64,000 nucleotides of DNA from Octopus bimaculoides (GCF_001194135.2 NC_068981.1:113470789-113534788); one strand, 5' to 3'; positions 4,145 to 42,200 are shown, counted from the first letter of the stretch. Program-made: numbers and translations. The notes: generated by a model not told the origin, from the sequence alone.

Positions 4145-4430
4145 AAGTTTTTTTCATTGCAACATTCACCCATTCTACCCATGTATCTTGGAAGGAGGAC
4201 ATCCAAGATCAGGGTAGAGGAAATCCCGCCAGATATAGATGTGACATGGGTTGCGGCGGCTGTCCTCCTTGGTAGCGAGGAGAAGGTGGCCGTTCTCCAA
4301 GCTACGGAAACGGAAGAGAGCAAGTGGAAAGGAAAAACATTGGAACTTATTATTCAGGTTGAGGCAGAATCTCTAGAAAATTTGGTGGAGATAGTGACTG
4401 TAGGAGACATAAGCTTAATGATATTACTGC
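4145..4430 (+). mobile_element. Tx1/L1-like ORF1 fragment
   Basis: GRRTSKIRVEEIPPDIDVTWVAAAVL...KWKGKTLELII is homologous to ORF1 of the 30755 element (YDVNWMAAAVI...NWKGQTLELLV). Confidence 0.75.
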
Positions 4431-16453: not shown

Positions 16454-17684
16454 AGTATATAGATATAGGGCAGAGAATTGCCAATTAGTTAATAAAATTA
16501 ATAATTAACAATTTTGCCAAGTAGTTCAGTATGCAAAAAACCTTTATCGGTAAACCATTTATAATTATAAACATATAGGGATCAGCATGAGTTGCTTCAC
16601 CAGCATACTGAAAATTTAGAAATAGCAGTCAAAGAACTACTAATTCTAACTACAATTTTTTCTCCAACAGATGGCGATATTTATGGCACGCATAGAACAA
16701 AACAGAAGAGAAAATAAAACGAAAACAAACCTGCCGTTAGTTAATCATGTACGACGTTTCGTGATTAGAATATAAAATTCTTTTCCACTCATCAGCATGA
16801 TATAAAAAATAAATCTGAAAATNNNNNNNNNNNNNNNNNNNNNNNNNNNNNNNNNNNNNNNNNNNNNNNNNNNNNNNNNNNNNNNNNNNNNNNNNNNNNN
16901 NNNNNNNNNNNNNNNNNNNNNNNNNNNNNNNNNNNNNNNNNNNNNNNNNNNNNNNNNNNNNNNNNNNNNNNNNNNNNNNNNNNNNNNNNNNNNNNNNNNN
17001 NNNNNNNNNNNNNNNNNNNNNNNNNNNNNNNNNNNNNNNNNNNNNNNNNNNNNNNNNNNNNNNNNNNNNNAGTATATAGATATAGGGCAGAGAATTGCCA
17101 ATTAGTTAATAAAATTAATAATTAACAATTTTGCCAAGTAGTTCAGTATGCATTTACCGATAAAGGTTTTTTGCATACTGAACTACTTGGCAAAATTGTT
17201 AATTATTAATTTTATTAACTAATTGGCAATTCTCTGCCCTATATCTATATATTGATGGTCTTCTCTTGGATGGTTAAACTGCAGTCTTTTCTGCGGGACT
17301 ATTTGTGACGCACATGGGATAATTTTGAGGAGGGATACGGAACTCACTAGTCGATAAATTTGTGGATGTTTTTTTCTGATGTGATATTTGATGTCGCATG
17401 GTCAGATATGCATGAGTATATTAGCATTTTCAGATTTATTTTTTATATCATGCTGGTGAGAGGAAAAGAATTTTATATTCTAATCACGAAACGTCGTACA
17501 TGATTAACTAACGGCAGGTTTGTTTTCGTTTTATTTTCTCTTCTGTTTTGTTCTATGTGTGCCATAAATATCGCCATCCGTTGGAGAAAAAATTGTAGTT
17601 AGAATTAGTAGTTCTTTGACTGCTATTTCTAAAGTTTCAGTATGTTGGTGAAGCAACTCATGCTGATCCCTATATGTTTATAAT
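16454..17684. mobile_element. Non-autonomous foldback hammerhead element with 13-bp target-site duplication
   Basis: CAAATTTGTTTTC at 16441-16453 and 17685-17697; arm 16564-16822 is inverted at about 17427-17684. Confidence 0.9.
16744..16801 (-). ncRNA. Type I hammerhead ribozyme, intact core
   Basis: ATCATG-CTGATGA-GTGG..AGAAT/ATTCT..TCAC-GAAAC-GTC-GTA^CATGAT. The inverted twin at 17447-17504 (+) has CTGGTGA and a stem II mismatch. Confidence 0.85.
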
Positions 17685-18867: not shown

Positions 18868-19460
18868 TATGAAGGAAAAATTTTATCGTCACTAATTGTG
18901 ACTGAGTGTTTCGAAGCACCTACATTGCAAAAAATAAGAGTTAAAAACTTCTAAAGATATAAGAAGCGCGCAAATATCTACTGACATGGGAGATAACCGC
19001 CTCATGGGATCACTAGACTAGACTAGTTTCGCCTATCAGTCGTAGGTTCGTCAGTGGTAACTACTCAAACGTTCGATGGTTTGGCCAAATCAGGTTGTCT
19101 GTATATATATTTTTACCATAAATTTTATGGCTGATTTAGCGAAATGCTAAATCGTATATCAAAAATTATTATAAATAGCTGGGCACTTTATAATACCGTA
19201 AAGGAAAAATTTGATCGTCACAAATTGTGATTGAGGTTGCCGAAGCGCCTATATTGCGAAAAGTAAGTTAAAATCTCTTAATGTTGATAGGCGAAACTAG
19301 TCTAGTCTAGTGATGCTGGAGATGCTCATGGGGCAGTTATCTCTCCTGTCTGTATATATATTGCGTGCTTCTGACAACATTATGTGTTGTTAACTCTTAT
19401 CTTTTGCAATATAGGTGCTTCGGCACTCTAAGTCACAATTAGTGACAATAAAACTTTTCT
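18868..19460 (-). mobile_element. About 330-bp unit hammerhead element: 1.2 tandem copies plus an inverted partial copy
   Basis: 18870-18945 repeats at about 19200-19273; 18870-19038 is inverted at about 19285-19460; HHR CTGACGA-ACCTA..TAGGC-GAAAC-TA-GTC at 19017-19058 with weak stem I. Confidence 0.8.
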
Positions 19461-20026: not shown

Positions 20027-21159
20027 AAGAGTGGGTATGTAAGAGAAAGAGGGACTGAACACTGAACTAACATGCTGAAGTAACATAGTGAAAGAACACA
20101 AATTTAGCCTTTTTGTGATGGTAATGAGGTGATAGTAAATAGTATGAGCTGTAGTTGTGATAGAGGCGGCGGTGATGGTGGTGTTTGTGGTGGTGAGGGG
20201 TAAAGTGAGAATAATCGATATGAAAGACAGCAGTGATGGTGATAGAAGGGAAGGCGGCCAAGTCAAAGGTATTGATGGCGGTGGCGATAGAAATCTGAAT
20301 GGTGTGTGTATGGCAGACGTGGTGGCGATGGTGGTGGTACTGTTGTTTATCATGCAGGTTTGCAATAAGTTCAAAGTTGATAAATTATATCATTATTTTG
20401 ATGAAAATTGTTCATTGCTTGAAAAATTTTGTTGAAGTTTAATAAAATTTGATATGTACTCAATGCATGAAGGGTTATTGTTGGGCCCAAGGCCTAATGA
20501 AGAGCCCTCCAAAGGAGCTATCTTAAAAGTCACCCGATAGGGCGGCTTTTAAGCTAGTTCAGTCATAAATACAAATTTAAATGATATTCTTCGATTGAAT
20601 TTGAAGTAACATAACGTATANNNNNNNNNNNNNNNNNNNNNNNNNNNNNNNNNNNNNNNNNNNNNNNNNNNNNNNNNNNNNNNNNNNNNNNNNNNNNNNN
20701 NNNNNNNNNNNNNNNNNNNNNNNNNNNNNNNNNNNNNNNTAACAGAATAAAAGAATATGCATACACACACAAAAACAGACATATCCATTATCCTTAAGCT
20801 TTCTATTTCTGAGAGGGCTGTAGTGATGCTGTTGTGACATATAGCGAGTTTGGGGCATTTAAACCTAGAGGAAACCATCCCTCTCCAGGTCTAAACACGA
20901 CTTATTCTTTCCAGCGAGAAAGAGGGAAAGAGAATATGAATTGGACTACAGCATTTAACACACACTCAGTCCCTTTCTCTTTCTGTATATATGTATAAAG
21001 TGATGGTATGCTGTCAACTTAATGTGACAGTCCCATGAAAGGGAAGAATGATACTGCTATTTAACCCTAGGAAACACCGTTTCCTGTTGGCCATGACATT
21101 TTCTGTGTCCTTATGTTTTCAAAGGGAGTGATAAGCACCTCTACCCAGCAAAGCCAGCA

Positions 21160-21202
21160 TCCAGAGACTAGTTTCAGAGTCATTGCTCATTATCAGTCTG
21201 GA
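21160..21202 (-). ncRNA. Degenerate type I hammerhead (G8A) just downstream of the Tx1 3' end
   Basis: TCCAGA-CTGATAA-TGAG..CTCT-GAAAC-TA-GTC^TCTGGA. Confidence 0.7.
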
Positions 21203-21224
21203 GTAGCATGGCTTGCTAGCTGAA

Positions 21225-24200
21225 TTTTTTTTATTGGGGCAATAAATGTCACACATAGATGGTACGATACAGGACAATACAAAAAAAAAATGTTATGAGA
21301 TCGAATGATGCTTTGTTTTTTTTTAAATTTTAATGAAATAATTAGATTTAATTTATAGTCTTTTTCCTTTTGGGAAGGGGATTATGCCCGGTTGCATCAA
21401 AGGCCCAGCGACGACCCCTTTCCTTTTTTCTTCCAATGCAAATCAAGTAGGGTTACTTTCACCCACCTTTCTTAACACAGCCTTCCATCTTTCCTCAAAC
21501 ACACTTCGCGACAGGATCATCTTCTCCAGCCCTATCTTGCTCTTCAGATGATATCTGAAGAATTGTAGCAAACCAGGGCCAGAGATGAAGGATCCCGTCA
21601 CGAGTCCTTGCATTCTAGTTTTCCACACACATTCTTTCAGTACAGCAACTGTACAGAAAAAACATACCTCACCTTTCTTTGAGAGTTCAGTGGGCGTTAC
21701 AATCTTTATTATAGATTCAGCCGATAGCTGTACTCTTCCTAATGCGACAACACGTGATCGACGTAAATCATCAAGCCTAACAACTCCCGACAATGTACAA
21801 AGGCGTGCTGGACAGTTTCATCGTCCAGCCCATATCTTGGACATATCGTTGGCACTGACATTCCGTGCCTGGATAACTTATCTCGAACAAGTAAAACATT
21901 CCTGTAACACTGCCAGGTCAGGGATTTTTGGTAATTATCCAAATACCCTGGCCCGAAAGTATTTTCGAACAGGTTGGTAAGTTGGTCCTCATCAAACCCC
22001 AGAGCTTCTCCTAGAGCGTCATCGTTTTTATGCTCTCCCATCTCTCTATATAAAACCGAGGTGGTGTTCCCACTACCGACCTTGCCCGTCTTGTGGATAA
22101 GCACGAGTTCCTGTTGACATTCCTTTTGCTATTCAGTCAGATTACGTCTTTTAATGAAACCGGGTTTAAATCGCTCCAAAGAAGCTGGTCGCAGAAGGAG
22201 TTCCTCTGCCAGCGGATTCCACACCTTATCACCTTCTAGGTAAGGTCAGAAATGCCTCAACCTCAACGCATGTCTGTGCATCATTAGCCAGGGCATCCCC
22301 AACCCACCCTTTAGCGGTTCCTGGCAGCAAACGGAGTGCCTCACAAGTGGCTTTCCACAAAAAGCGGAAAAGGAGGCGTTCCAACTTGTTTAACCACGAA
22401 TCGAGGCAAGGGACAACGGTCAGGTGGTAGGTGATTACAGATGCAATAAACATCTGTACCACCTCCGCCCTTCCTTTCAAGAACAGAGCCCTTCCAGACC
22501 AAGTCCGTAGAGCCTCTACCTTGTCTGCCACTCGCTCCAATTCTTCGTCCAGTCCAAATCAAACTCCAAGCAACTTAAAAGGATCATCTGTCCAGTGACC
22601 CACGACACTGGACGATATCGACTTGCTCCTCCAAGTGTCGAGGCGCAAGCCAATGGACTTGTCCCTTTTGTCCCTGCCACTGCTCCGTATCCTTTGATTG
22701 CATCTTCTACACAAGGTAGCTGCGCTTCATTGGACACGATGAAGGTGACGTCATCCGCATAAGCAGAGACCGACTTACCGCATCCAATTTCATTAGGGTT
22801 ACCTCCTAACTTCTCCAGCTTCCACAGCAATGGCTCAAGAGCCAACACATACATGGCGGAGATCCACTTACGGAAATCCGAGCCCATCCCAGGCACTTCG
22901 AAGACCGCCGTCAGGTACTGGTGGTCTACCCTATCAAACGCTTTATTTTGGTTTAAATGGACCATGGCCTCACCTATGCCGGTTAATTTACCCACCCTGT
23001 CTAAGGTGTAGCGGATAAGGTGAAGATTGTCCTAGATTGACCTGCCTGGGATGGCGCATGTCTGCGTCCTCCCTACAAGTTTCTCCACGACACACGTCAA
23101 CGTTTTAGCTAACACCTTGGCCAAAATCTTTAACTCTACATTAAATAGAGTTATGGGCCTGTAATTAATATTATCCCCCTTGCTCGGAACCTTCTGGATC
23201 AGCGTCACTGCTCCCCGACTCACAGAGCTGGGAATCCTCCCATTCTGTTGCCAGTTTGTGTAGACGCTAGCCAGCAGAGCCCTGAACAAGTTCGGCATAC
23301 TACGATAAAACTCATAGGGTAGACTATCCAGCCCAGGTGAATTGTCCCCGGCGCACTCGGCCAACACCTCTTTTACCTCCGCAGGAGTGATCGGTCATTC
23401 ACAGCATTCCGCCTCCCGTGCCGAGAGTCGCGGTCCACCGGCTAGAAAGTCCTTTAACGGCTCCACATGCCCAAGCGTTCCGCTCTCCCCGAACAACTGA
23501 GCGAAACGCCGATGAAAGGTCTTTTGCATAATTTCCTGTCCATAGATCTTGTGCCCCTGTTCGTCAGTTAAAGACTTTATAGAGGCTTTTTGCCCTTCTG
23601 ACTCTCCACACGACTTGCCCATTCGGTAGTGTTAACACCTTCTTGCCCCACTGCACGTAACTTAGCTCTAACTCTGCTGCCTTCGCGTTTGGCTTTGAGG
23701 AGTCCATGGCCTCGCCTAAATTATTAAGTAACTCCCCTTCTATCCTAGATCTATCTAAACTTAGTTGATTGCTAAATCTAATAGACTCTAAACGAATGGC
23801 TCTCCTTAGGGCGTGCCACCATCTATTATTAATGATAGCACCACATAGTGCCCCCTGTACTAACTCTTTAATCCGGGCACGGAAGTCTTTACAAATCAAA
23901 ATAGGCTTGTTCATCTTCCAGTACCCGGGTCCCTGTCTATGACATTTACCTACGCGTTCCTCACACGTCACAAATTTGTGGTCCGTGTAAGGTACAACAA
24001 AAAATCGTGAACAGCTAAAAGTATCCCTATCTCTTTCCCTAACGAATACTTTATCTATGTAAGATCTGCGTGAGCCGTCGTTATTACTCCATGTCTACTG
24101 TGGAACGCTCGGCTCATCTGGTCTGTAACGGTCTACTAGATTATAGCTCTCTAATAGACCCTTAAGTCCAGGATTTCCTTTCTTATCAGTCGAGCCAACA

Positions 24201-24819
24201 CTATCCACTCATGCATCAAGGATAGTGATAAAGTCTCCTAACAGAACAACCGTTTTTGACGTCACTAGAAAGTGTTCTAGGTTTCGAAAAAAAACCAGAC
24301 TGCCCTCGCTCGTTAGGATCGCAGACAGCTACCAGCCTGTAAGACTGTTTACTCACGTGGGTTGCATCCAGGACAACCAGCCTACCTTCTGGGTCCAGAA
24401 ATCAGTACTTATTGTAAGTCCAAGTTCTTCCAGAATAAGATCACCAAGCCCCACTCCTTGTCTGCTAGGAGCGATAAATTTCTCATAGCCATTCAAGAGA
24501 GGCGAGAACACTTGTGGTTCACTCATCTTGGACTCAGTTACAATGCACACATCTATATCATGTGACCTGAGGTCGTCCAGGAAACAAGTTTGTTTCCATT
24601 TCGACCCCAGACCATGCACATTCATGCACCCTAACTTAATCGACATGATAAAAAAAAATTTTAAGGAGTACTTTCAGTTTAAGTTGGGGTAGGGGTTGCA
24701 CAAGTTTTTCTCCCCCACATCTTTCTCTTTGCTTGGTGTAGCAGCTGGGCTTTCTCTAGGTGTGGTAGCCGGGCTTACAGTTAGCTTCCCCTTCCGCCAC
24801 CTCGGAGCTGACGTATTCG
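21225..24819 (-). mobile_element. Tx1/L1-like LINE copy A (end of ORF1, decayed ORF2, 3' UTR, A8 tail)
   Basis: APE MSIKLGCMNVHGLG (24646), PGYWKMN, SPGLDSLPYEFY, NKAFDRVDH, YADD, CPRYG..ETVQHAFVHC, stop at 21443; T8 at 21225-21232. Confidence 0.93.
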
Positions 24820-24821
24820 TA

Positions 24822-26332
24822 CATGTCAAAATTCTTTATTTATTTAATTTCTAATGAACATAAATGGGATATACCAATACTATATTTGCATACACATACA
24901 CAAACTAAGAATATGTAAAAGAAACTAATAAATTATAGTAACTAATGAATTTATATACAAATGTAAATATTTAGAGGTGAAAAAAGTATTCGTACAGAAC
25001 ATAAATAACTGATAATTCTGATTTAATACTTCGTAGCATAACCATTATTCAGTTCCACTTCAACCAATCTCTTCTTGTAGTTCTTAATCAATGACTCGCA
25101 TGTTTCTTTAGGAATTTTTTCCCATTCTTCTTGACAAATTTTCTTCAAATATGGAATGCACATTGGGGCTCTTGAATGAGTTTTAATTTTCAAATAACGC
25201 CACAAATTTTCAATGGGGTTCAAGTCGGGTGACTGGCTTGGCCATTCTAATAATTTTATATTGTGATTGACAATCAATATTTGGTAGGCTTCGCCGTGTG
25301 CTTAGGGTCGTTATCCTGTTGTAAAACCCACCCTTCACAAAGCTGGAGCTTTTCTACAGAGTCCCATAAATTATTGTTCAAATTATTTTGGTACATCTCT
25401 GCATTCATTTTACCATCTATCACATGTAAATTGCCAGTGCCATTTGCAGAGAAACACTCCTACACAATTATGTTGCCACCTCCAAACTTTACAGTAGGAA
25501 TTGTGTTTTTCGTCGAATAGGCGGTACCATCATTCCTCCAAACATGGCTACGCGAATTTCGTCCAAACAATTCAATTTTCGACTCGTCTGTCCAAAGAAC
25601 ATTTTACCAGAATGTATCAGATTTATCTTTATGTTCATAAACAAATTTTAAACGGACATCTCTATGCCTTTTAGTAAACAGTGGAGTTTTTATAGGAGAG
25701 CATGACTTCAGTTCATTCTTATGAAGTTCATTGCTGATTATTCATAGTGTGACACTAGACCCTGAAGCTAACAAATCTTCTTGCAGCTCCTTTCTGGTGA
25801 TCATTGCGTTTATTTTTGATACTTCACTTCATTTTTCTTAAAGATCTAGGGGAAATCATGCGTGGTGCACTGGATTTTATTCTGTTTTCAACAATTGCCG
25901 ATTTTTTATATCTTTGAATAAATGAAGATATAGTAGAAAATGGAATACAAAGGGTCTCTGATATTTTCCTGTAACTTTTACCGGCTTTCCACTGTTCAAC
26001 AATTAAGTTTTTCACTGAATTTGTGAGTTCTTTACTTTTCGCCATTATTAGGACACTACTTTATGTTGTCTCAGTGCTGAATGAAGAAGATAGCATTTTG
26101 ACACTTAAAAATGACTACTGATAAGATTATTGGAACAAACAAGAAAGTTCTAGTTAAAAAAAAAATTTAACAGTAACTCATAAATATTTATAATTGTATA
26201 TAGATTCATTAGTTACTATAATTTATTAGTTTCTTTTGCCTATTCTTAGTTTATGCATGTGTATGCAAATATAATATTGGTATATCCCATTTATATTCAT
26301 TAGAAATTAAATAAATGAAGAATTTTGACATG
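24822..26332 (-). mobile_element. Tc1/mariner DNA transposon with long terminal inverted repeats, decayed DD34E-type transposase
   Basis: TA-CATGTCAAAATTCTT... and ...AAGAATTTTGACATG ends with about 150-bp TIRs; MAKSKELT.. [38 protein letters not shown]. Confidence 0.95.
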
Positions 26333-26956
26333 NNNNNNNNNNNNNNNNNNNNNNNNNNNNNNNNNNNNNNNNNNNNNNNNNNNNNNNNNNNNNNNNNNNN
26401 NNNNNNNNNNNNNNNNNNNNNNNNNNNNNNNNNNNNNNNNNNNNNNNNNNNNNNNNNNNNNNNNNNNNNNNNNNNNNNNNNNNNNNNNNNNNNNNNNNNN
26501 NNNNNNNNNNNNNNNNNNNNNNNNNNNNNNNNNNNNNNNNNNNNNNNNNNNNNNNNNNNNNNNNNNNNNNNNNNNNNNNNNNNNNNNNNNNNNNNNNNNN
26601 NNNNNNNNNNNNNNNNNNNNNNNNNNNNNNNNNNNNNNNNNNNNNNNNNNNNNNNNNNNNNNNNNNNNNNNNNNNNNNNNNNNNNNNNNNNNNNNNNNNN
26701 NNNNNNNNNNNNNNNNNNNNNNNNNNNNNNNNNNNNNATATATATATCCAAATTAAGCAGCCATACATGTAGTAATCGAATCAAACTCAAAGTTGTTTTA
26801 GCCCATTGCAAACACGTTGAACCTAGTGTTGGTTGTTAGGGTGACTTCATATAAAAAGTTTGGAAATTCAATTTACGTTACGTAGGAAAAATAAAACAAA
26901 ATATTCTCGGTAATCTAATTAATTTCGTTATTTGAAACTACAGATTATTAGCTTAC

Positions 26957-27076
26957 CTTGAAGAGCGAAGCGCTTTGAAATTCTAAATTGTATTGGTTCA
27001 CGCCTAGAGGGGATCATATCAAAAACACCACAGCGTTTTTTCTGCATTTGTTTTATAGTAAATCTATCCAACTTTC
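26957..27076 (-). CDS. MMP: MMP coding exon 3 (cysteine switch and activation site)
   Basis: tttttcgcag acceptor; (G)KLDRFTIKQMQKKRCGVFD...RISKRFALQ(G); gtaagc donor, phase 1. Confidence 0.96.
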
Positions 27077-27510
27077 CTGCGAAAAATGAAAATATATAAA
27101 TCCACTATTAAACAATATCATTATTTAGCATATATTTCGCAGTTCTTTTGCATCATCATCATCGTTATCACCCTTTTGATAATAATTCCGTCATACTAAA
27201 GTCATAAGCGAAATTACTAGCAAGTAGTGAAATCCATACAAACAATATAATTATGTATATGTAATAAAATTCTAACGATACAACAATACACACATGCAAA
27301 AAAAAAAATCAAATATTAGTATACAGAAAAAGTACATGGACTATTTTGGAAAGTAAACGTTTGCTCAGTGTACGATTTTTTCAGATAAATAAATGAAAAA
27401 TAACATTACGATAATTTTCTACTGATTTGCAATTTGACACAGATGTAGATAATGGAGCTAAACTCACACACGCGAGCGCGCACATACACATACATACATG
27501 CATGCATGCA

Positions 27511-27544
<34 letters not shown>

Positions 27545-27552
27545 CATACATA

Positions 27553-28115
27553 CAAGACACTATAATGAAATCCGTCGAAAGGATAACTCGGAGAACAAAG
27601 AAATAAAGACCCACAATATGGTAGAAGTCATAGCCACTCATAATAAAAAGGAGTACTGGTGGAATGTCCCAGTGAAGACCTCAATAAAATGTATGCACAA
27701 CAGACCTGATATAATGATTCGGTATAGAGAAGAAAACCTGTGTACAGTTGTGGAAATTAGCTGTCCAGCGGATGTTAACATAAAGCTGAAGATCAGTGAA
27801 AAAGAGAATACCTACGCTGAACTATTGAGAAATCTGCAGTTACTCTATCCAGATTACAAGTTCAGGTTTATACCTGTAATTAATGGGGCCCTGTGATATG
27901 TAACACACTGCCTACATAACTATCTTGAGAAATTTGGCTCCTGAAAACCAAATGTAGAAAGCTAATTCGAAGACTGCAGATACAAACCATCACTGCAACT
28001 GTAAAGATCTGTAAAACTTTTCAGAGGTTTATCATTCAAATATATATGAGCATGTCTAAATATGCAACTATATGCATGAGAATACATACATAAAACAAAA
28101 CATACGAATCTACAC
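27553..28115 (+). mobile_element. 5'-truncated RLE LINE embedded in (CATA)n; relatives at about 42655-42950 (-) and 50060-50625 (-)
   Basis: EYWWNVPVKTSIKCMHNRPDI...VEISCPADVNI..K..EKENTYAELL; (CATA)n on both sides. Confidence 0.9.
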
Positions 28116-28194
28116 ATGTACATACATACATACATACATACATGCACACATGCACACATGCACACATGCATACATGCACACATACAGACATTAA

Positions 28195-28426
28195 TGCGGC
28201 GAGCTGGCAGAAACGTTAGCACACCGGGCGAAATGCTTAGCGGTATTTCGTCTGCCGCTACGTTCTGAGTTCAAATTCCGCCGAGGTCGATTTTGCCTTT
28301 CATCCTTTCGGGGTCGATTAAATAAGTACCAGTTACGCACTGGGGTCGATATAATCGACTTAATCCGTTTGTCTGTCCTTGTTTGTCCCCTCTGTGTGTA
28401 GCCCCTTGTGGGTAGTAAAGAAATAA
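28195..28426 (+). mobile_element. tRNA-derived SINE; related fragment at about 58535-58710 (-)
   Basis: A-box-like GGCAGAAACGTTAG and B-box-like GAGTTCAAATTCC; AT-rich end. Confidence 0.8.
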
Positions 28427-28470
28427 CACATACATACATACATACATACATACATACATACATACATACA

Positions 28471-28580
28471 AAAATATCCTGTTGTTGATGTTGAAATTCT
28501 AAAGAAGGAGCCTTGGATCTAGGTTAGAAACAAGCTCTTTCTCTATTAGCATGAAATCTTGAAATAAAACTGAACAATGA
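28471..28580 (+). mobile_element. 110-bp element flanked by (CATA)n; two tandem copies at 49696-49804 and 49853-49963 (-)
   Basis: Three similar copies, each bounded by CATA/TATG arrays. Confidence 0.8.
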
Positions 28581-28869
28581 CATACATACATGCATGCATA
28601 TAGTAGTAGGCATTTGTCGGTCTCGAGAGACCACGGATCTGCGCCCGAAGAAATCATGTCAGCTGCTGATGGTGGTGCAGCATCTGTTGTGGCTGTACAG
28701 GCCCACAAGGGAGTGACAGTCACGCATACAGCGACTGCATTTGAAGGAGCCTTTTGCCGGCGCTACTGGTTTTTCCTCCCATTGAGTGCGCTTTTCTTTG
28801 GTGGCGAGTTCCTGTTTTTCTTCCGCTTTTCTTGGTGGCGAGTTCCTGTTATACTACCATATTGTGGGT

Positions 28870-29350
28870 TCTTATTTCTTTCACAGTATTTGTCTCCAGT
28901 GTAGGCGATCATTTGCAACCTCCTCCCATCTCAGGACATCCAGATCAAGCGACTTCATATCTCTCTTACAGACATCTTTGAAATAATGATGAGGTCGTCC
29001 TCGTGCTCTTGTGCCGGCCGCCAACTTCCATAAAGGAGGTCTTTTGGGTCCTTCCGTCCGGCATGCGATGTACATGACTGAGCCAGCGCAAACGACGCTG
29101 CTGGAGCAGGGTGAGTATCCTGGTGCACTCCGGATTTTGCTTTCAGCCTCGGCAGACCAAGCAGTTTGCCGCTTGATCTGGTGTGGAGGTAAGCACCATC
29201 AGTTGATGTCCCAAATGCATGTTTCAGTATAATTGCAAAGAAGATGCCAAATAGGCTGGGAGCAAGCACACAGCCCTGTTTCACGCCCCTACGTATGTTG
29301 AAGGCCTCCGAGAAAGAGCCATCAGATTGAACGATGCCTTTCATGTCCGC
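28870..29350 (-). mobile_element. RTE-clade LINE fragment with internal deletion
   Basis: GVKQGCVLAPSLFGIFF...fused to RARGRPHHYFKDVCKRDMK. Confidence 0.85.
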
Positions 29351-30752
29351 GTGAAATGATTGGACAAATGGTGGTGCGCCCTGAAACGAGCTATTCGATT
29401 AGAGTCTCTTACATTTAGTAAAGTGCTAAGTTTAGAGGGGACTAGAATACAAAGGTAGTTAACTAAGGAATTAGAGGAGACCATAGCATCAGGTTCGGCA
29501 TCAAGAGTGTTGGCGGCGAGAACGGTATTATTTCGTCACCTCAAAGCCAAACACGAAGAGTGTAGAGTCAGGGCTAAGTTACGCGCGGTGGGCAGAGAAG
29601 GTATTAACGTTGCCGGATGGACCCGTGGTGTGGAGAGTCGGAGTGGCAGACAAGCCTCTGTACAGTCTTTAATTGACGAAAAGGGGCGTGTGATCGAAGA
29701 ACAGGAGATGCAGAAGGCCTTTCATCAGCATTTCACCCGTTGTTTGGGACGAGTGAGGAGTTGAACCACGGGAGCCCTTAAGGGATTTCCTGGCCGACGA
29801 GCAGCGATTCTCGGCGCGTGAGGCGAAGAGCTGTGAAGGGCCGATCACAGCTGCGGAGGTCGAAGAGGTGCTGGCCGAATGCGTTCGGGACAAGTCGCCA
29901 GGACTGGATGGTCTGCCCTACGAGTAGTATGCCGGACTTGTTCGGACACTTGCTGGCTTGCGTCTACACGAACTGGCAACAGAATGGGAGAATTCCAAGC
30001 TCTGTGAGTCGGGGAGTGGTAATACTGGTCAGAAAAAACCCGAGCAAGGGGGATCATATTAGTAATTTCAGGCCCATAACTCTACTAAATGTAGAGTTAA
30101 AGATTTTGACCAAGGTGTTAACAAAAAGCTTGACGGTTGTCGCGGAGAAACTTGTCGGAAAGGCGCAAAATTCTGCCATCTCTGGCAGGTCGATCCAGGA
30201 CAATCTTCATCTATTACGCAACACCTTAGACAGGGTGGGTAAAGTATCCGGTAAAGGTGAAGCTCTGGTCCATTTAGACCAAAGCAAAGCTTTCGATAGG
30301 GTTGACCATCGGTACCTGGCGGCAGTCCTTGAGGGAGCTGGGCCCAGACTTCCGCGGTAGGATCAAGGCCATTTATGGTGGCATCAAATCCACAGTGCAT
30401 CTGAACGGTTACCTGCCGGAGCCGTTCGAGACCAAGCGTTCAGTTCGTCAAGGGTGCCCCCTATCAAGTTGGTTTGCGGCTTAGCACCTGGAGCAGCAAG
30501 CCGATAACGTTCAGTATCGTAGGGCACTGGACGGATGGTCCTGTTAAGTTGCTCGAAGTTTGGTTTGGTCCGGACTCCCAGACGGAGAAGAATTAGAGTG
30601 AGGTGACGGACAGAGTAGAAGCGCTAACCTGGACCTGGTCCGGAAGAGCTCTGTCCCTGAAAGTGAGGGCGGAGGTGGTGCAGACGTTTATTGCGTCTGT
30701 TATCATTTACCGTCTGACCGTTGTCCCTTGCCCCGATTCGTGGCTATGCAAG
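29350..30752 (+). mobile_element. Tx1-like ORF2 fragment, same family as copy B
   Basis: NFRPITLLNVELKIL, QSKAFDRVDH; close similarity to 32950-34035. Confidence 0.9.
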
Positions 30753-30754
30753 AC

Positions 30755-33700
30755 GACATGGCGACAAGGCTGGACTTCCTTCTCTGCGAGATGGATTTCC
30801 CACTGGTACAGGAAGAAAACCAACAAGTCAACCAAGAAGAAGCGAAGAAAAAAAATATTTTAAGCCGCCGTAGGTGGAAAGTTTTGTGAAATTTAAATAT
30901 CTAAGGAGCAGTTGTTCAAATACAGGACTATGATTAAAAAGTGTGGCAACGAGACGAAACTGTTGCCACCTAAAGAGATAATTCAAAATTTGGCGGAAAA
31001 AACTGTTGTATATAAAATATACAACAGGAAAGATAAGCAGATCATGCCCATGAAAAACGATATTGTTGAGAAACGCCTCGCCCCCATATAGAGAAAAATA
31101 AAATATGTTGGGCGTGGTCCAAGAAATGCGACGGTGGAGGTGCAGTTTGAGAATGCAGACATTGCCAAAGAAATTTCAACTCAAACTCTCAAGACGGACC
31201 AAATAATGTTACTACCAAAATTATAATAGAGAAGATTATGGCCGGGTACGATGTCAATTGGATGGCGGCAGCAGTAATATACGACACAGAGGAGGAGATA
31301 AATATTTTAAGCATGAAGAAGAGAGAGGCAGTGAATTGGAAAGGTCAGACGCTAGAACTATTAGTACAAGCTTCTAACGAAACGCTAGAAGCAAAGCCCG
31401 ACAGAATATTCATAGGGGAGGGAATCAGCGCAAGAGTGTCGGTGGAGGGGCGTCGATCCAGATGCTTCAAATGTGGAGAAAAGGTTCACGTCCGCTCCGA
31501 GTGTGAAAAGGTAAAGAAACCGGCACAAAAAAGAACTGAAGTCCCTCCCCGACAAGAGAAAGACCAACTGGAGAAAGACCAACGGAAGAAGAACAACAAA
31601 GAAAAAGAAGAAGAAAAAGTAGAGAAATCACAAGATAAAGAAAATATGGAAGGAGAAGAAATGGAATTTGCCGTTGTATCACACAAAAGGAAAAAAGCCC
31701 TCACCCCAGACTTCCCTCCCCTGACAAGAAAAAGAAAAGAAACATTACAAAACACACATACATAAAAAAATAACCCCATCCCCTTCCAAACCAAAACCCA
31801 CCCCAACCCTCCCCCAAATCACACAGGGGGAAAAATAGTGTCGTACAGTACGAAAAACACAATCTTACATGGCTTATTAAAAAGAAAAAAAATTATACAA
31901 CATTGGGACCGATAGAAGGCAAACCGCCACATTTGTGGCTAGCTAGAGTGGACATGGAACACTATGAACAATTTAAACAACTATATCCAGAGGATATATT
32001 CGACGTAAGCCAGTACATAGTGAAAGAAAAAATTGTGCTGGCACCAGCGGCTACACCAGAAAAAGAAGAAACGGAAGGAGGGGACGACAAATGTCGTACA
32101 GCCCCTCCTCAAGTTTAAAATGTAAGTATGTTCAACTTTTACAATGGAAATTAAGTTAGGGTGTGTAAATGACGTGGCCTGGGATCGAAATGGAAGCAAA
32201 CCTCAGGTCACAGAAATTAGATATATGTATTGTGACTGAGTCCAAGTAGAACGGGCTACAGGTGTTCTCGCCTCTTCTAAATGACTACAAGAAATTTATT
32301 TCTCCTAGTCGGGGAGGAAGCGGGGGCGTGGTGGTGTTGTTCAGAAAAGCTTCGACGTACAGGTAAGTACAGTCTTTCTGGACCCAGAAGGTAGGTTGGT
32401 CGTCCTAGATGTGACACACGTGAGTAAGCAGTCCTTCAGGCTGGTGGCACTCAACACTCCGCATGAGAGTAGGCAAACGGGTTTTTTTTCGAGATCTGGA
32501 GAACTTTCTAGTAACGTCTACAACTTTAGTTTTAAAAGGAGACTTCAACACTATTCTCGACGCGCGAGTGGGTAGTGTAGGCTCGACCAATAGAAAGGGA
32601 AACCCTGGTCTAAAAAGGCTACTAGCGAGCTATAACCTAGTAGAGCGGTACAGACCGGATAAACCGCTCGTTCCACAGTGGACGTGGTCTAATAACGAAG
32701 GTTCACTCAGATCTTATCTAGATAGGGTAGTTATAAAAGATAGAGATAGAAACACAGTTGTCCACGCTTTTGTTGTACCTCCTACACCGATCACATTTTG
32801 ACTAGTAAAGTCTTCTGTACCCGGGTTAAGGAGTTAATTCAGAGGGCATTATGCGGAGCCATCGTAAATAATAGATGGTGGTGCGCTTTCAAGCGAGCCA
32901 TTAATTCAGAGTCTCTTAGATTTAGTAAAGAGCCAAGTTTAGAGAAGATTAGAATAGAAGGGCAATTAATTAAGGAATTAGAACCCATGGTATCCGGCTC
33001 TGCATCCAGAATACTGGCGGCGAGAACGGTATTACATCGTCACCTCAAAGCCAAACACGAAGGGTGTAGATTCAGGGCTAAGCTACGCGAAGTGGGCAGA
33101 AAAGGTATTAACGTTGCCGGATGGGCCCGTCGTGTGGAGAGTCGAAGAGGCAGACATGCCTCTGTACAGTCTTTAATTGACGAACAGGGGCGTACAATCA
33201 AAGGACAGGAGATGCAGAAGGCCTTTCATCAGCATTTCGCCCAGTTGTTTGGGACGAGCGAGGAGTTGGACAATCTTCATCTCTTACGTTACACTTTAGA
33301 CAGGGTGGGTAAAGTACCCGGTAAAGGTGGCGCTCTGGTCCATTTAGACTAAACTAAAGCTTACGATAGGGTTGACCATCGGTACCTGGCGGCAGTCCTT
33401 GAGGCGGCTGGGCGAGGCCTAGATTGCCACGGTTAGATCAAGGCCATTTATGGTGGCATAAAACTCAGTTCAAATAAACGGTTACTTCTCGGAGCCGTTT
33501 GAGATCAAACACTCGGTTCGTCAAGGGTGCCACCTGTCTTCGCTTCTATATGTATTGACTCTTGAGCCATTGCTGTGGAAGTTGGAGAGTTTGGGGGCAT
33601 CCCAAATGAAATCGAATGTGGTAAGAGTGTCTCTGCGTACACGGATGACGTCACCATCATCGCGTCCAAGATGACTCAGCTACCTCGCGTAGCAGAGGCA

Positions 33701-35190
33701 ATCAGAAGATACGAGACGGTGGCAGGGACAAAAGTTAACATGGACAAGTCCGTCAGTTTGCGGCTCGGCACCTGGAGCAGCAAGCCGATAACGTTCAGTG
33801 TCGTAGGGCACTGGACAGATGATCCTGTTAAGTTGCTCAGAGTTTGGTTTGGTTCGGACTCTCAGACGAAGAAGAATTGGAGTGAGGTGACGGACAGGGT
33901 AGAAGCGCTAACCCGGAATTGGTCCGGAAGAGCGCTGTCCCTGAAAGTGAGGGCGGAGGTGGTGCAGACGTTTATCGCGTCTGTTATCATCTACCGTCTG
34001 ACCGTCGTCCCTTGCCCCGATTCGTGGCTATGCAAGCTGGTAAGGATTCTCTTCCGCTTTTTGTGGAGGGGAAAACCGCTTGTGAGGCGCTCCGTGTACT
34101 GTTAAGAACCGCTAAATGGTGGCTTAGGGATGCAGTGGTTAATGATGTGCAAATATGCACTGAGACTAAGGCATCTCTGGCTCTACCTGGATGGTGGTCA
34201 GGTGTGGAATTCGCTCGCAGGGGAATTCTTTCCACGATCAACCTCCTTGGAGGAATTTAAACCCGGTTTGATTAAAAGACAAAAAACGACTGAATGGCAA
34301 AAGGAATGTCGGCAGGCACTCGCGCTAATCAGCAAGGCGGGCAAGGCCGGCAGCGGGGATACCACCTCTGCATTTTATAAAGGGTTGGTAGAGTACAAAA
34401 GTGACGACGTTCGAGGAGAGACACTGGGACTCGATGAGAACCAGCTATCCAAACTGTTTCAGAACACTTTCAGGGTGGGGTATTTAGATAACTACCAAAG
34501 ATCCCTGACCTGGCAGTGTTTTAGGAATGCGTTTCCTATTCACGAGAAATTGTCCAAGCACGGATTGTCAGTACCACCGGAATGTCCAAGGTGCGGGCAG
34601 GACAAGGAAACTATCCTGCACGCTCTTGTACAGTGCACACAGCTGTCGGAGCTGACAATTTACGTAGAACACGTGTTGTCACACCTAGGGAAAGTACAGC
34701 TATCGGCTGAGTCTGTGATTAAGAGCGTACCGCCCACTGGGCTATCTAAAGAAGGTGAAGCTTGTTTTCTATGTACAGTTGCAGTAATGAAAGAGTGTGC
34801 ATGGAGAACTAGAATACAAGGAATCAAGACAGGAACCTTCATCTCCGGCACTGGAATGCTACTATATTTTAGGTATCACCTGAAAAGCAAGATAGGGCTG
34901 GAGAGAAGGCACCTGTCGAGAATCGTATATGAGAAAAGATGGAAAGGTGTGGCAAAGAAGTTAGGAATAAATGTCCCTTCTTAATCCCCCCCCCATGGTA
35001 AAAACAGGGTGTAGTCGCTGGTCAACCAGCCAAATGTCGAACAAATAAGTTATCCTTTAAAAAAACTATAATTATATATACATTTTTAAAAACGATTTTT
35101 ATATAAACTCGCTGAGCACTTCTCTATGTTTGTAAGGTCCTGTACCGTCCCCTCTATGTCTCGATAATATATTTATCATAATTAAAAAAA
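30755..35190 (+). mobile_element. Tx1/L1-like LINE copy B, near full length (ORF1 from 30758, ORF2 to 34984, A7 tail)
   Basis: ORF1 CFKCGEKVHVRSEC knuckle; APE; RT YTDD; CPRCGQDKETILHALVQC; about 435-bp deletion at 33268/33269. Confidence 0.95.
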
Positions 35191-35201
35191 CAGGTGATTG
35201 T

Positions 35202-35246
35202 CACACGCTGATGACGGGTCAATATACGGAAACTCGGGTCCGTGTG
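35202..35246 (+). ncRNA. Type I hammerhead ribozyme, intact core, 11 nt after the Tx1 A-tail
   Basis: CACACG-CTGATGA-CG..CG-GAAAC-TCGG-GTC^CGTGTG; stem II is only 2 bp. Confidence 0.8.
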
Positions 35247-35474
35247 TATCACGTCAGGTTGAAGATGGGAAGGATGGCTTCCCTTTGCAAATACTGATAG
35301 CACACAGAAAGTGTGTCAATAGACAGCTGGAGGAGGTGTTCTCCTGGGGCTACAAGATACAGTAGCATGCACCCTTAAGGGTTAGCGACATTTAAGTGGC
35401 AAATATACTTCACGATGACGTGCAGCTACTGTTTATACCTCGTTCAGAGATTTATATATATTAGTTTATGTATA

Positions 35475-35789: not shown

Positions 35790-36164
35790 NNNNNNNNNNN
35801 NNNNNNNNNNNNNNNNNNNNNNNNNNNNNNNNNNNNNNNNNNNNNNNNNNNNNNNNNNNNNNNNNNNNNNNNNNNNNNNNNNNNNNNNNNNNNNNNNNNN
35901 NNNNNNNNNNNNNNNTATATATATATATATTTAATTGTATCAAGGACCTATAATCCTTTAAGGGATTTTAACATCCTAGTCCTCTGGTTTATACCAGTGT
36001 TCAGTGTAAACGCAATATATTAGTTTTACTTTGATATATATGTAGGTATTTAAAATATTTATGAATGGGAATGTTCAAATCCATATAATTTCATTATATG
36101 GGTTTGCATATTTTTAAATAAACTGATGTCTGCATGACAATTTCTCCATTTTCTTCTTTTGTTC

Positions 36165-38608: not shown

Positions 38609-38656
38609 TCATGTCTGACGACTATTAGATCAATACGAAACTCTTCGGTAGCATGA
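38609..38656 (+). ncRNA. Type I hammerhead motif, intact core
   Basis: TCATGT-CTGACGA-CTATT..AATAC-GAAAC-TCTTCG-GTA^GCATGA; C.C mismatch at the base of stem II. Confidence 0.7.
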
Positions 38657-38829: not shown

Positions 38830-39238
38830 TCAGTGGATAGGGCAGCAGACTCGCGATCATAGGATCGCGGTTTCGATTCCCAGACCGGGCGTTTTGAGTG
38901 TTTATTGAGCGAAAACACCTAATGTTCCACGAGGCTACAGCAGGGGGGGTGGGGTGGCGAACCCTGCTGTACTCTGCCACCACAACTTTCTCTCACTCTT
39001 TCTTCCTGTTTCTGTTGTACCTGTATTTCAAAGGGCCAGCCTTGTCACACTCTGTGTCGCGCTGAATCTTCCCCGAGAANNNNNNNNNNAAGGGCCAGCC
39101 TTGTCACACTCTGTGTCGCGCTGAATCTTCCCCGAGAACTACGTTAAGGGTACACGTGTCTGTAGAGTGCTCAGCCACTTTCACGTTAATTTCACGAGCA
39201 GGCTGTTCCGTTGATTTGATTAACCAAAACCCTCGTTT
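38830..39238 (+). mobile_element. tRNA-derived SINE
   Basis: B-box GGTTTCGATTCCC at about 38868-38880; a 49-bp duplication across the small gap is probably an artefact. Confidence 0.75.
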
Positions 39239-39249
39239 TTAAATCACAT

Positions 39250-42200
39250 ATCGTGCCTTTCTTTATGAATGAGCTACTCCACATCGGTCACCGGAGTGAT
39301 ATTTGATTACTCTATAGAGTGTCTGAGTGTCGGTTTGGTGTATGGAATGGGAGAGCTTAACTCATCGGCAGGTAGAAACTCTTCAACCTTGGTTGGTAAT
39401 CTACCTAGGAGAAGAAAATCTCCGAAACAAAACCTGAGGACTTGGAAGTTCCTAGTTTTGTCAATTTTCATGTCACATCGGCGAAAGTCTTCTCTTCTTA
39501 GGACAATAGGTGGGGTTAGTGCAGTGCAAGCTACACCCACTGAAAATTATTCATATGCACAGGTACTTCCTGTACTCCAAATCTTAGTAAAATCATTCAA
39601 TTGGTTGGTTGGTAGAAACCTAAAAATGCACTTGTAACTTATTCTAAAATGTCTCAAACAGATTCAGTAACTGGCAAAAAAGGCTTGCGAACGTCAGGGA
39701 AACAGGTCTGGCTCGGCAGGTGTCCCAGTGTGTCACAGGCTGGACCCGGTCGTCATCCTGCCACTGTGGTCAAACGATCTTCAAGAAAAAGTAAAAATAA
39801 ACATCTTTTGAATTTCGGTTGTTGGAATGTGTGCACACTTCTTGATGATAATTTCACGAAGAGGCCAGAAAGGTGTACTGTACTTATTGCATGTGAGCTC
39901 AAGAAATATTCCCTTGATATAGTTGCGCCCTCCGACACTCGTCTCTCTGGTGAGGGTCAAGTAAATGGATATACTATCTTTTGGAGAGGTCTACTTAAGG
40001 GTCAGCGTAGAGAATCTGATGTTGGGTTTGCTTACTAGATTACATTAGTATTCTCCATTGCAGAAATTCCAAGTGGTATACCTGAACGGATCATGTCATG
40101 CCGAATTACACTGACAAAAGGTAGGTATCTTACCGTTGCCAGTATTTATGCATCAACAATGTCCCATTCTGATGAATCTAGTACAATTATTGAGGAAAGT
40201 ACCAATTTCTGTCAAGCTGGTCATATTGGTAGATTTCTATACAAGAGTTGGAAAGGGCTATGTTTCATGGCCTGTGTTCGGTCGATATGGTATTGGAAAA
40301 TGTAATAAAAATGGAGTAGCTCTTTTGACGTTTTGTACTGAGAATAATCTGGTTGTCACCAACACTCTGTTTAAGCAGAAAAAAAAATATAAAACCATCT
40401 GGATGCACCCAAGATCTAAGCACTGGCATCTCATAGATTATATTCTGATCAGGAACCGTGATATGGAAGATGTTTCTAGTGTTCGGGTTATGAGAGGGGC
40501 AGAGAGCTGGACTGACCATCATCTAGTGCGTAGAAAAATAGATTTTTCGATAATCGACAATCTGGTCCTTAGGTATCCAAAAAGTTAAATGTTGCAAACT
40601 TTAAATTATCAAGCGACTTGCAGATTCCACGATGTTATAGAAAGTAGCAATATTGACCTCAACAATTTATGGGAAGATTTCAAAACAAAAGTATTTCAGG
40701 CTGCAAGTTCGTCGGTGGGATTTAAATCTCATAAATCCAGTGACTGGCTCTTAGACAGATCAATAGAAATTCATGATCTACTTTTAGAAAAACAAAACTT
40801 GAACCCCAATTCAAACGAAGCTTACAGAAAGCTGAAAAGGAAAGTGCAGACTGCTCTAACGAAAATTAAACAGGAATGATGGAATGATAGAGCAAGAGAG
40901 GCACAAGAAGCAGCTGATAGAGATGATGACAAGGGTTTGTACTCTTATGTTAAAGAGGTATTTGGCCCAAAATCTTCCTCAATAGCTCCAGTGAGAACAG
41001 TAAATGAACGTTTTCTTCTGAGTGACACCGCTTCTATTCATAAGCGTTGGGTAGAACATTTTTCTGCTCTTTAAAATAGACCATCATCCGCTGACATGAG
41101 GATGATAGAAAGAATTGAACACCTAGTTATAGAAGAGATGGCATTTGAACCAACTCTAATGACATTTATTTAGTTGTGAATAAGCTGAATAAGTCTTCAG
41201 TGTTTGATGGAATCTGTGCAGAAGTCTTGAAAGATGGGGGTGACAAAATGTTTGAACTCTTAAATATATTAATTTGTCACTGTTGGAGAACTGAGAAAGT
41301 GCCTCAAGACTAGATTGATGCCATTTTAGTCTCCTTGTATAAAGCAGGACCAAAGGATCTGTGTGGTAATTTTCGTGGGATTTCGCTTTTGTCTGTGGCT
41401 GGAAAGGTACTTGCCCGCATTTTGTTAGAACGTTTAAATACCTTTATAGTTCCAAATATAGTGTCTGAGTCTCAGTGTGGCTTTCGCTCCTCCGGGGGCA
41501 CAGCTGATTGTATTTTTACTGTCATACATACAAGAAAAGTGCATTGAACAGAATCTTGTTCTATACCAATGATTTGTTGATCTGAGCAAAGCATTCGATA
41601 CCGTTAATCGAAAAGGACTGTGGCTAATTCTAAGGAAAATAGGTTGCCCAGAAAAATTTGTAAACATGGTCAGAGCTTTGCATCAAGATTTTGGTGGTAG
41701 GCTCTCTGGATCTTTTGTTGTGGAAAATGGAGTAAAGCAAGGAGACCTGATGCACCCACCTTATTTGCAATATACTTTGTTGTTGTGTTGTCACATGCTT
41801 TTCAAAACTCTGAGGAGGGTATTTACATAAAATATTGAACAACAGGGAACGTTTTTAATCTGACCAGACTGAAATTCAAAACGAAGGTTTTTACTTCATT
41901 CATTAAGGAACTTTTATATGCTGACGATTGCGATCTTGTCAGTCATTCTGGAACAGGTCTGCAATATCTTGCATCTGCATTTGACACAGCTTGTGATGAT
42001 TTTGGCCTGACCATCAATCTGAAAAAAACCCAGTTGTAATGCATCAACCTGCATATGGTTTATAACCCCATTAAAATTTTTGGTAAGGGAAAGTTACTTT
42101 CTTTTACTTCAAACACAGATGTCATTGCATCTGCAGGCTTCACCTCAATTAAAGCTATGATTTTGTGGTACCAATTGAGATGGTGTGACCATATTGTTCG

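Follow-up and report, generated by a model that had tools for sequence, protein, structure and literature searches.

The retroelements with which hammerhead ribozymes have been associated are Penelope-like elements, Terminons, retrozymes and schistosome Sm-alpha (PMC4209133, PMC7229834, PMC6155905, PMC8557442). Type-I hammerhead repeats are abundant in animals, and it is still debated by which autonomous element they are mobilised, the candidates being long interspersed nuclear elements (LINEs) or Penelope-like elements (PLEs): the 2020 retrozyme paper of Cervera and de la Pena has metazoan retrozymes mobilised by 'LINEs or PLEs' (PMC7229834), and a 2026 preprint attributes this mobilisation to Penelope-like elements. 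Here we describe a 64,000-nt stretch of the Octopus bimaculoides genome (GCF_001194135.2 NC_068981.1:113470789-113534788; hereafter the window, with positions counted from its first letter), in which two decayed LINEs, copies A and B, are each followed just past their usual 3' terminus by a type-I hammerhead motif and by a module common to both, hammerhead and module forming together a unit of about 210 nt. A third instance comes from a Logan contig, L021, and the evidence for a hammerhead behind the LINE consists of the sequence analysis of these three decayed copies. No report of such an arrangement was found in the literature searched, so that the initial annotation of this DNA, which knew of no description of a link between Tx1 LINEs and hammerheads, stands in this respect. 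We tentatively favour, short of calling it probable, the reading that a retrozyme-like unit was captured at the LINE 3' end and has thereafter been inherited with the clade.

Metazoan retrozymes of the kind without long terminal repeats (LTRs), which are type-I hammerhead repeats of 170-400 nt (PMC7229834), have the same build, with a 6-bp helix I, a short helix III and a palindromic loop of 2-4 nt, and they are also alike in unit size (207-215 nt in our case), in low GC content and in having no LTR, primer-binding site or polypurine tract. They form tandem arrays of at least two units of a 170-400 bp repeat, and their monomer RNA is highly self-paired, as a rod, and able to circularise. Each of our loci, in contrast, holds a single unit, of fitting size; the unit described here also has no rod-like fold, which in decayed copies is weak evidence, and is always found immediately after the terminus of a single LINE clade. 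Penelope-like elements whose pseudo-LTRs contain hammerheads (PMC4209133, PMC8557442, PMC11167929) resemble it in combining a hammerhead with a retroelement that moves by target-primed reverse transcription, in a helix III which suggests dependence on dimers, and in the lack of poly-A at the unit end. Such elements consist of a reverse transcriptase (RT) with a GIY-YIG endonuclease, flanked by hammerhead-bearing pseudo-LTRs; the frames that adjoin our hammerheads encode instead an endonuclease of the apurinic/apyrimidinic (AP) type, RT and zf-RVT (matches to Exo_endo_phos, RVT_1 and zf-RVT), no pseudo-LTR is present, and the hammerhead lies 3' of the coding region, past the LINE terminus.

LINEs themselves are known to carry ribozymes similar to that of hepatitis delta virus at the 5' ends of R2, RTE and L1Tc, and a small ribozyme in the 5' untranslated region (UTR) of human L1. 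Common to these and to our case is a self-cleaving RNA within, or co-transcribed with, a non-LTR retrotransposon, but here the ribozyme is of the hammerhead class, is placed at the 3' end and has a core that is kept on the upstream fragment. A further parallel is given by sequence-specific LINEs of the Tx1 group, such as Tx1L in Tx1D, and by LINE 3' transduction, where the same foreign sequence occurs at the 3' end of independent copies; site-specific insertion or 3' transduction can each alone yield a shared 3' flank. Unlike these, the octopus LINEs have a hammerhead unit as the partner, the association spans lineages with a synonymous divergence (dS) of about 0.65, and the 5' flank of copy A is hidden.

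A hammerhead unit behind two LINE 3' ends

Both hammerheads lie on the strand of their LINE (Table 1), that of copy A beginning 22 nt past a run of eight A (21232-21225) and that of copy B 11 nt past a run of seven A (35184-35190). The motif of A has helix I UCCAGA/UCUGGA, the core CUGAUAA, a helix II of 3 bp and the palindrome ACUAGU as helix III, with cleavage predicted after C 21166; that of B has helix I CACACG/CGUGUG, an intact core CUGAUGA...GAAA, a weak helix II (C-G, G-C, G.A, G-U, that is two Watson-Crick pairs) and a near-palindromic helix III, ACUCGGGU, with cleavage predicted after C 35240. The coordinates, the distances from the A-tracts, the 14-nt stem II region of both copies and the G8A core change of copy A, all proposed in the initial annotation, were confirmed on the sequence. 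The hammerheads were aligned structurally by hand; MAFFT misplaced helix III, the 3' strand of helix I, and L021.

In this alignment the cores of A and B are identical at C3-A9, G12-A14, A15.1, C15.2, G16.2, U16.1 and C17 except for position 8, which is G in B and A in A, where C3 faces A8 (the known U3-A8 covariant requires U3; PMC4209133). Order and spacing of the core elements are correct in A, B and L021, the core being complete in B and changed by G8A in A and by G12A in L021. Helix I pairs at 6/6 positions in A and at 6/6 in B; four pairs differ by double compensatory changes, two are unchanged and none is broken. Helix III has 2 bp with a palindromic loop. This is how most metazoan type-I hammerheads are built: helix I has 6 bp, helix II is short, and the two pairs of helix III close a palindromic loop of 2-4 nt. 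Motifs of this kind are thought to act as dimers (PMC4209133). Because the core is conserved and all changes of helix I are compensated, the hammerhead fold has, to judge from these copies, been under selection, and the copies of today are damaged. The earlier suggestion of selection on the fold, drawn from a stem I that was replaced and still pairs, is supported; the replacement concerns four of the six pairs.

When a type-I descriptor was slightly relaxed, so as to accept G or A at position 8 and a helix II with as few as 2 bp, it gave four matches in the window against 0.017 per shuffled window: A, B, and two more, at 38609-38656 (+) and 16801-16744 (-), which meet also the strict type-I descriptor. 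Rfam hammerhead models gave no match at the gathering score or at E <= 10, with the whole window or with 121-nt pieces; this silence says little here, since the models miss both of the strict hammerheads too. It may nevertheless be taken, together with the core or helix defect present in every copy, as a sign that the motif has no ribozyme function and is either a conserved stretch of 3' UTR resembling a hammerhead by chance or a dead relic. The folding energy of the unit, which is not unusual (z of -0.25 for A and -2.7 for B as linear molecules, 0.04 and -2.2 as circles, with branched and not rod-like structures), goes in the same direction. We consider such a reading improbable, for the positions conserved are the core bases, helix I varies only with compensation, the number of descriptor matches is far above expectation, and defects are to be expected in old, decayed copies. 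This view overlaps with the three arrangements considered below, any of which could contain a relic.

Past the hammerhead the two copies continue to be homologous. Blastn returned one continuous alignment, A 22851-21006 with B 33549-35408, of 72% identity, which runs through the A-tract, the hammerhead and the module. By dinucleotide shuffles, the UTR upstream of the hammerhead has z 9.0 at 71% identity and the module z = 12.4 at 72% identity in aligned columns, and for the 200 nt beyond the module z is 1.2 with no identity. As homology vanishes there, the unit can be delimited: it stops at about 21000 in A and at about 35413 in B. The initial annotation had judged these downstream segments about two-thirds identical by eye and left the similarity to a proper alignment, which bears it out; the first collinear block, TCCCTTTG, begins 38 nt past GUC in A and 39 nt in B, as it had stated. 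The whole unit measures 207-215 nt and is low in GC. We also considered the module as a repeat of the LINE 3' UTR or of the UTRs of relatives, as in tails shared between LINEs and short interspersed nuclear elements (SINEs), and rejected this, as there was no similarity.

The window holds two modules and two 3' ends of the A/B clade, which coincide 2/2, and no solo, unoccupied module. Module sequence was found neither in the 468 nt upstream of the composite that copy B forms with the LINE fragment C at its 5' side, nor in the sequence beyond the gap upstream of A, the immediate upstream flank of A being hidden by a Tc1-like element and that gap. A tandem second copy of the module downstream of A is suggestive by eye and not significant (z 1.7).

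Table 1. Features of the window, with positions counted from its first letter
Feature	Position	Strand	Description
LINE copy A	21222..24815	minus	decayed endonuclease, RT and zf-RVT frames, 3' UTR
Copy A canonical 3' terminal block	21222..21275	minus	GTCCTGTATCGTACCATCTATGT...GCCCCAATAAAAAAAATTC, ends at 21222
Copy A spacer, LINE terminus to hammerhead	21203..21221	minus	19 nt, AGCTAGCAAGCCATGCTAC
Copy A type-I hammerhead	21202->21160	minus	UCCAGA-CUGAUAA-14 nt-GAAAC-UA-GUC-UCUGGA
Copy A module	21000..21159	minus	about 160 nt past the hammerhead; homology to B stops at about 21000
LINE copy B	30753..35191	plus	ORF1, endonuclease, RT, zf-RVT, 3' UTR
Copy B canonical 3' terminal block	35137..35191	plus	GTCCTGTACCGTCCCCTCTATGT...ATAATTAAAAAAAC, ends at 35191
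Copy B spacer	35192..35201	plus	10 nt, AGGTGATTGT
Copy B type-I hammerhead	35202-35246	plus	CACACG-CUGAUGA-14 nt-GAAAC-UCGG-GUC-CGUGUG
Copy B module	35247..35413	plus	about 167 nt past the hammerhead; homology to A stops at about 35413
LINE fragment C	29368..30752	plus	RT region only, 85-93% identical to B, both ends truncated
LINE copy D	62547->60496	minus	different subfamily, as in L002 and L005
Tc1/mariner-type transposon	24816..26332	minus	upstream of A; outer 5' end runs into gap 26333-26737
Assembly gap	26333-26737		starts within outer end of the 5' inverted repeat of the Tc1-like transposon
Assembly gap	20621-20739		about 260 nt beyond the A module; limits reading of the flank
Assembly gap	35790-35915		about 380 nt beyond the B module; limits reading of the flank

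The usual terminus and the junction

The terminal block of the LINE can be described as GTCCTGTAYCGTNCCNTCTATGT ... AATAAA. The blocks of A and B align with the termini of the related LINEs L002, L014, L015 and L001, and the 23-nt terminal block occurs twice in the window with 0 occurrences expected by chance. Five related termini (those of L002, L014, L015, L001 copy 2 and the decayed L001 copy 1) end at ...CCAATAAA(A)GAAATC. L002, L014 and L015 finish at ...GGCCAATAAA(A/G/T)GAAA(T)C followed by (ATT)n; the terminus of related LINEs may be written also as ...GGCCAATAAAGAAATC before (ATT)n, and that of sister lineages as ...CCAATAAAGAAATC plus an (ATT)n tail, and in L001 copy 2, which is from Argonauta, the block is followed by a short A/T-rich stretch. 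Since the related LINEs end at a homologous block, the A-tract belongs to the canonical terminus of the family, which agrees with the earlier placement of the end of the LINE body. The hammerhead unit is thus an addition beyond this terminus, seen only in this clade.

In the relatives (ATT)n comes directly after ...AATAAAGAAATC, as long perfect runs in L002 and L014 and with its first units only in L015. The start of L014 is without (ATT)n, and the repeat therefore looks like the tail of the element, not like a target microsatellite. In L001 of Argonauta hians (8014-8670) a LINE with an intact C-terminus of open reading frame 2 (ORF2) has a short A/T-rich tail. Next come a SINE-like piece with an A-run at its end and then a second LINE copy that consists of the 3' UTR only; tails of this LINE family seem to attract further insertions.

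After the terminal block A and B have no (ATT)n: the last C of the block is followed by AG, the spacer and helix I, so that the junction is tail-less and falls at the same LINE nucleotide in both. Many LINEs of the Tx1 group are sequence-specific, and such a junction may be understood as that of a LINE clade with a precise, tail-less insertion site 10-25 nt upstream of the hammerhead of a dispersed repeat, much like Tx1L in Tx1D or R1 and R2 in ribosomal DNA. Spacer, hammerhead and module would be target DNA in this case. The hammerhead could trim read-through transcripts, and the short stretch of target sequence so left at their 3' end could pair with the next target. We regard target specificity, the leading alternative, as doubtful, albeit a serious possibility. 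It would account for the tail-less junction at a point where relatives have (ATT)n, for the conserved terminal block, which stays at the junction where an RT-binding element is expected, and for the observation that nothing tail-like follows the module; cleavage would, moreover, cut the module off the LINE RNA. The window, however, has no unoccupied module, with two of two being occupied, which needs nearly all nearby targets to be filled, and neither the 5' side of the C/B composite nor the sequence past the gap upstream of A showed anything module-like.

A third lineage

Contigs of the closer relatives L016 and L017-L020 end short of the terminus; one of them, L017, is from another lineage, is 71% identical to A and B and ends 150 nt into the UTR. 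L021, like L017 a Logan contig (runs SRR118693xx) and identical to L022 over the terminal part, is from a third lineage, which shares 68-69% identity with A and B; unlike those contigs it extends to the LINE 3' end. Its terminus, ...ATATAAAAGAAACAATC (also given as ...GATCATATAAAAGAAACAATC), is followed by a spacer of about 18 nt including CAGGTGT, which stands before helix I and resembles CAGGTGAT of B, and then by CTGACGA, 14 nt, AAAAAC, AGGAGCA, GTC and CCGCGA. Helix I of this motif pairs at 4/6 positions and is in sequence unlike both A and B. We estimate roughly that a CTGANGA-N14-RAAAC string would occur by chance at this spot about once in 100,000, and we count L021 as a third, decayed instance, on sequence grounds, of a hammerhead behind the LINE terminus.

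The contig stops 152 nt beyond the terminus. Past the motif it is collinear with A and B, but this part is not significant alone (z 0.9-1.7; nhmmer finds nothing). The UTR of L021 compared with those of A and B has z 3.2-5.9, against 11.3 for A with B, and the drop past the motif is proportionate to this weaker similarity of the UTR.

With L021, the motif follows 3/3 of the 3' ends that can be read in the clade, as it would in a site-specific element; the distance from LINE end to helix I, on the contrary, varies (19, 10 and about 18 nt), which does not suit precise targeting.

Divergence of the LINE and of the unit

A comparison of A and B by codons gave a proportion of synonymous differences (pS) of 0.43-0.45, a proportion of nonsynonymous differences (pN) of 0.13-0.34 and a ratio of nonsynonymous to synonymous divergence (dN/dS) of 0.25-0.48, or about 0.3, the two lineages differing by a dS of about 0.65. 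A and B are, on this codon evidence, two once-active lineages, long separated, which diverged under purifying selection. Segmental duplication of one dead copy was considered as well and is ruled out by the dN/dS of about 0.3, and the hammerhead unit therefore adjoined the LINE in two separately evolving lineages.

We also simulated neutral divergence and aligned the simulated pairs in the same way as the real sequences. By alignment score the module fits a divergence p of about 0.40 and the upstream UTR one of about 0.44, both near pS, so the module has diverged about as much as the synonymous sites and the upstream UTR. If the LINEs had entered pre-existing targets, an equal divergence of the module and the neutral sites of the LINE would be a coincidence.

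The same result bears on a further possibility, that a non-autonomous hammerhead element, be it the monomer of a retrozyme, a truncated Penelope-like fragment or a SINE-like unit, entered the A/T-rich LINE tails separately in each copy, such tails being hot spots of insertion. Penelope-like elements are reported to favour microsatellites (PMC8557442), solo hammerheads are usually interpreted as truncated Penelope-like elements (PMC4209133), and the tail of L001 in Argonauta has in fact gathered a SINE-like piece and a second copy of the 3' UTR. Three events would be needed, however, in the same orientation and with nearly the same start, and with (ATT)n gone on both sides; moreover, the divergence of the module follows that of the LINE, there is no module elsewhere in the window, and the ORFs downstream of either module that were scanned gave no Pfam match, and so no Penelope-like frame (RT/GIY-YIG) either. 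Independent insertions are thus very improbable in our opinion.

Proposed capture and inheritance of the unit

Capture of the unit followed by inheritance with the LINE is favoured because the divergence of the module matches pS, as co-inheritance predicts; because homology is unbroken across the junction and ends at the same point in both copies; because both modules in the window adjoin LINE ends and none is solo; because the junction lies where relatives terminate, and is tail-less and identical in A and B; and because the third lineage, L021, has the same arrangement. The compensated changes of helix I and the number of motifs, far above expectation, also speak for it. The initial annotation had offered two alternatives, a LINE that targets a hammerhead repeat and a module that travels with the LINE as a passenger; the evidence leans to the second of these, and the first stays alive.

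According to this proposal, a cephalopod LINE clade of the L1/Tx1 type would carry the unit of about 210 nt just past its usual terminus, an ancestral master copy having acquired the unit at its 3' end in a single capture. The source was probably a retrozyme-like or Penelope-derived hammerhead repeat, which either inserted into the tail or was picked up by read-through beyond it; the unit would have taken the place of (ATT)n and have been copied by reverse transcription along with the LINE since then. LINE transcripts would read through the AAUAAA/AUUAAA box into the unit, where the hammerhead, paired with that of a second copy, may cut after GUC; a helix III of 2 bp with a short palindromic loop should require two copies for folding. 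Such a cleavage would yield two products, a LINE RNA whose terminal 2',3'-cyclic phosphate lies about 60 nt downstream of the box, and a tail RNA that starts with a 5'-OH and is about 165 nt long. Any new copy in which the module is retained must on this proposal derive from uncut RNA, and therefore cleavage would limit the LINE, or free the tail as a small dependent RNA, rather than make the end of the LINE's template.

Several observations speak against capture and inheritance. A hammerhead located upstream of the last 160 nt would sever the template's own 3' end. After the module in A or B we find no (ATT)n, poly-A or tandem repeat (TRF), and no target-site duplications were found around B or the C/B composite. 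To this have to be added the silence of Rfam, the non-significant similarity of L021 past the motif, and the defects of all three hammerheads (G8A in A, the weak helix II in B, G12A and two mismatches in helix I of L021). The copies are, finally, three in number, and solo modules may exist elsewhere in the genome.

A unit kept at the LINE 3' end across a dS of about 0.65 would be direct evidence of a link of such repeats with LINEs, whether the LINE is a carrier or the unit a dedicated target. A hammerhead at the 3' end would join the ribozymes of LINEs, which so far are known at the 5' end and are of other classes. One may go further and suggest that in cephalopods it is a LINE of the L1/Tx1 type, and not a Penelope-like element, that carries and mobilises the type-I hammerhead unit. 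Sharing transcript and 3' end with the LINE, the unit would be freed from read-through RNA by dimer-dependent self-cleavage, as a small dependent RNA that owes its production to a ribozyme instead of an RNA polymerase III promoter. This would amount to a LINE-retrozyme partnership, with, for the first time, a hammerhead permanently built into the 3' region of a LINE. This extension we think rather unlikely at present. Should the association fail genome-wide, the finding would shrink to three chance juxtapositions of decayed repeats.

The LINE copies and their relatives

The features of the elements are compatible with the wider L1/Tx1 group, which has an AP endonuclease, RT, a C-terminal zinc-binding domain and a CCHC motif in ORF1. 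Pfam matches to RVT_1 and zf-RVT are present in both A and B, the AP-type endonuclease (Exo_endo_phos) is matched in B at 32424-32798, and all three domains are found in a full-length relative, L014. ORF1 of B has an ATG near 30758, a frame at 31202-31762 and a CCHC knuckle, CFKCGEKVHVRSEC, seen by eye; its zf-RVT C-terminal domain spans 34106-34981, with the stop at 34984. For copy A, tblastn with the protein P0005 spans 23971->21485 and blastn against B reaches 24748. That both are LINEs, as first annotated, is thus well founded.

The annotation had also described the 5' junctions as obscured. This is correct for A, whose 5' side is truncated or interrupted at about 24815 by the Tc1-like transposon, with the gap behind it; the 5' end of B looks complete, ORF1 starting near 30758. 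Gap 26333-26737 hides the 5' junction of A only and, being more than 5 kb away from the 3' ends of both A and B, has no bearing on the hammerhead observation; no LINE homology was found beyond it. Fragment C adjoins the 5' end of B in the same orientation, which suggests either a template-switch chimera or a join made in assembly. As was noted from the start, C shows neither a module nor a clear tail; it lacks the 3' end and is for this reason uninformative on the module. The 3' UTR of copy D has no recognisable terminal block, tail, hammerhead or module.

The best protein relatives, 52-53% identical, are encoded in Argonauta hians and on contigs of JGI, ENA and NCBI, and the closest C-terminal fragment among 1.84 billion representatives searched is the Octopus bimaculoides protein A0A0L8HND8 (69% identity), for which a contig look-up had none on record. 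From these relatives the element is therefore identified, at the level of protein similarity, as a cephalopod LINE. Protein-based searches for loci and a search with the pattern GTCCTGTAYCGTNCCNTCTATGT in metagenome, prokaryotic-genome and viral collections gave nothing. Seven viral matches to a module pattern were rejected as chance, each spanning the pattern alone.

Other elements in the window

The window is AT-rich (GC about 36-38%), abundant in repeats and interrupted by nine assembly gaps. The Tc1-type transposon next to A has inverted repeats of at least 152 nt at 24822-24973 and 26181-26332, which are 93% complementary, and transposase frames at 26060->25026 on the minus strand with few stops, nearly intact, one of them matching DDE_3; it is much younger than the adjoining LINE.

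The two strict type-I hammerheads outside the A/B clade have flanks without homology to the A/B unit. That at 38609-38656 (+), UCAUGU-CUGACGA-15 nt-GAAAC-UCUUCG-GUA-GCAUGA, is antisense to and upstream of decayed RT frames of LINE type (minus, 38320->37400). That at 16801-16744 (-), AUCAUG-CUGAUGA-28-nt helix II hairpin-GAAAC-GUC-GUA-CAUGAU, adjoins the gap 16823-17070, and about 1.4 kb upstream of it, on the minus strand at 18350->17800, RT-like frames are seen by eye, with RVT_1 at only E = 0.03. At about 19000-19060 (-) there is a core CUGACGA...GAAAC-UAGUC with the ACUAGU palindrome of A and no pairing helix I, followed by a short TAGTC repeat.

A stretch at about 38840-38930 (+) resembles by eye the 3' half of a tRNA (GGTTTCGATTCCCAGACCGGGCG) and is possibly a tRNA-derived SINE, ARAGORN reporting no tRNA in the window. 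Further remnants of retroelements are an RT frame with RVT_1 at E = 4e-20 at 1336-2094 (-), a weak RT match at 41188-41478 (+) and, at 4199-4408 (+), an ORF1-like frame that is 40% identical to ORF1 of copy B.

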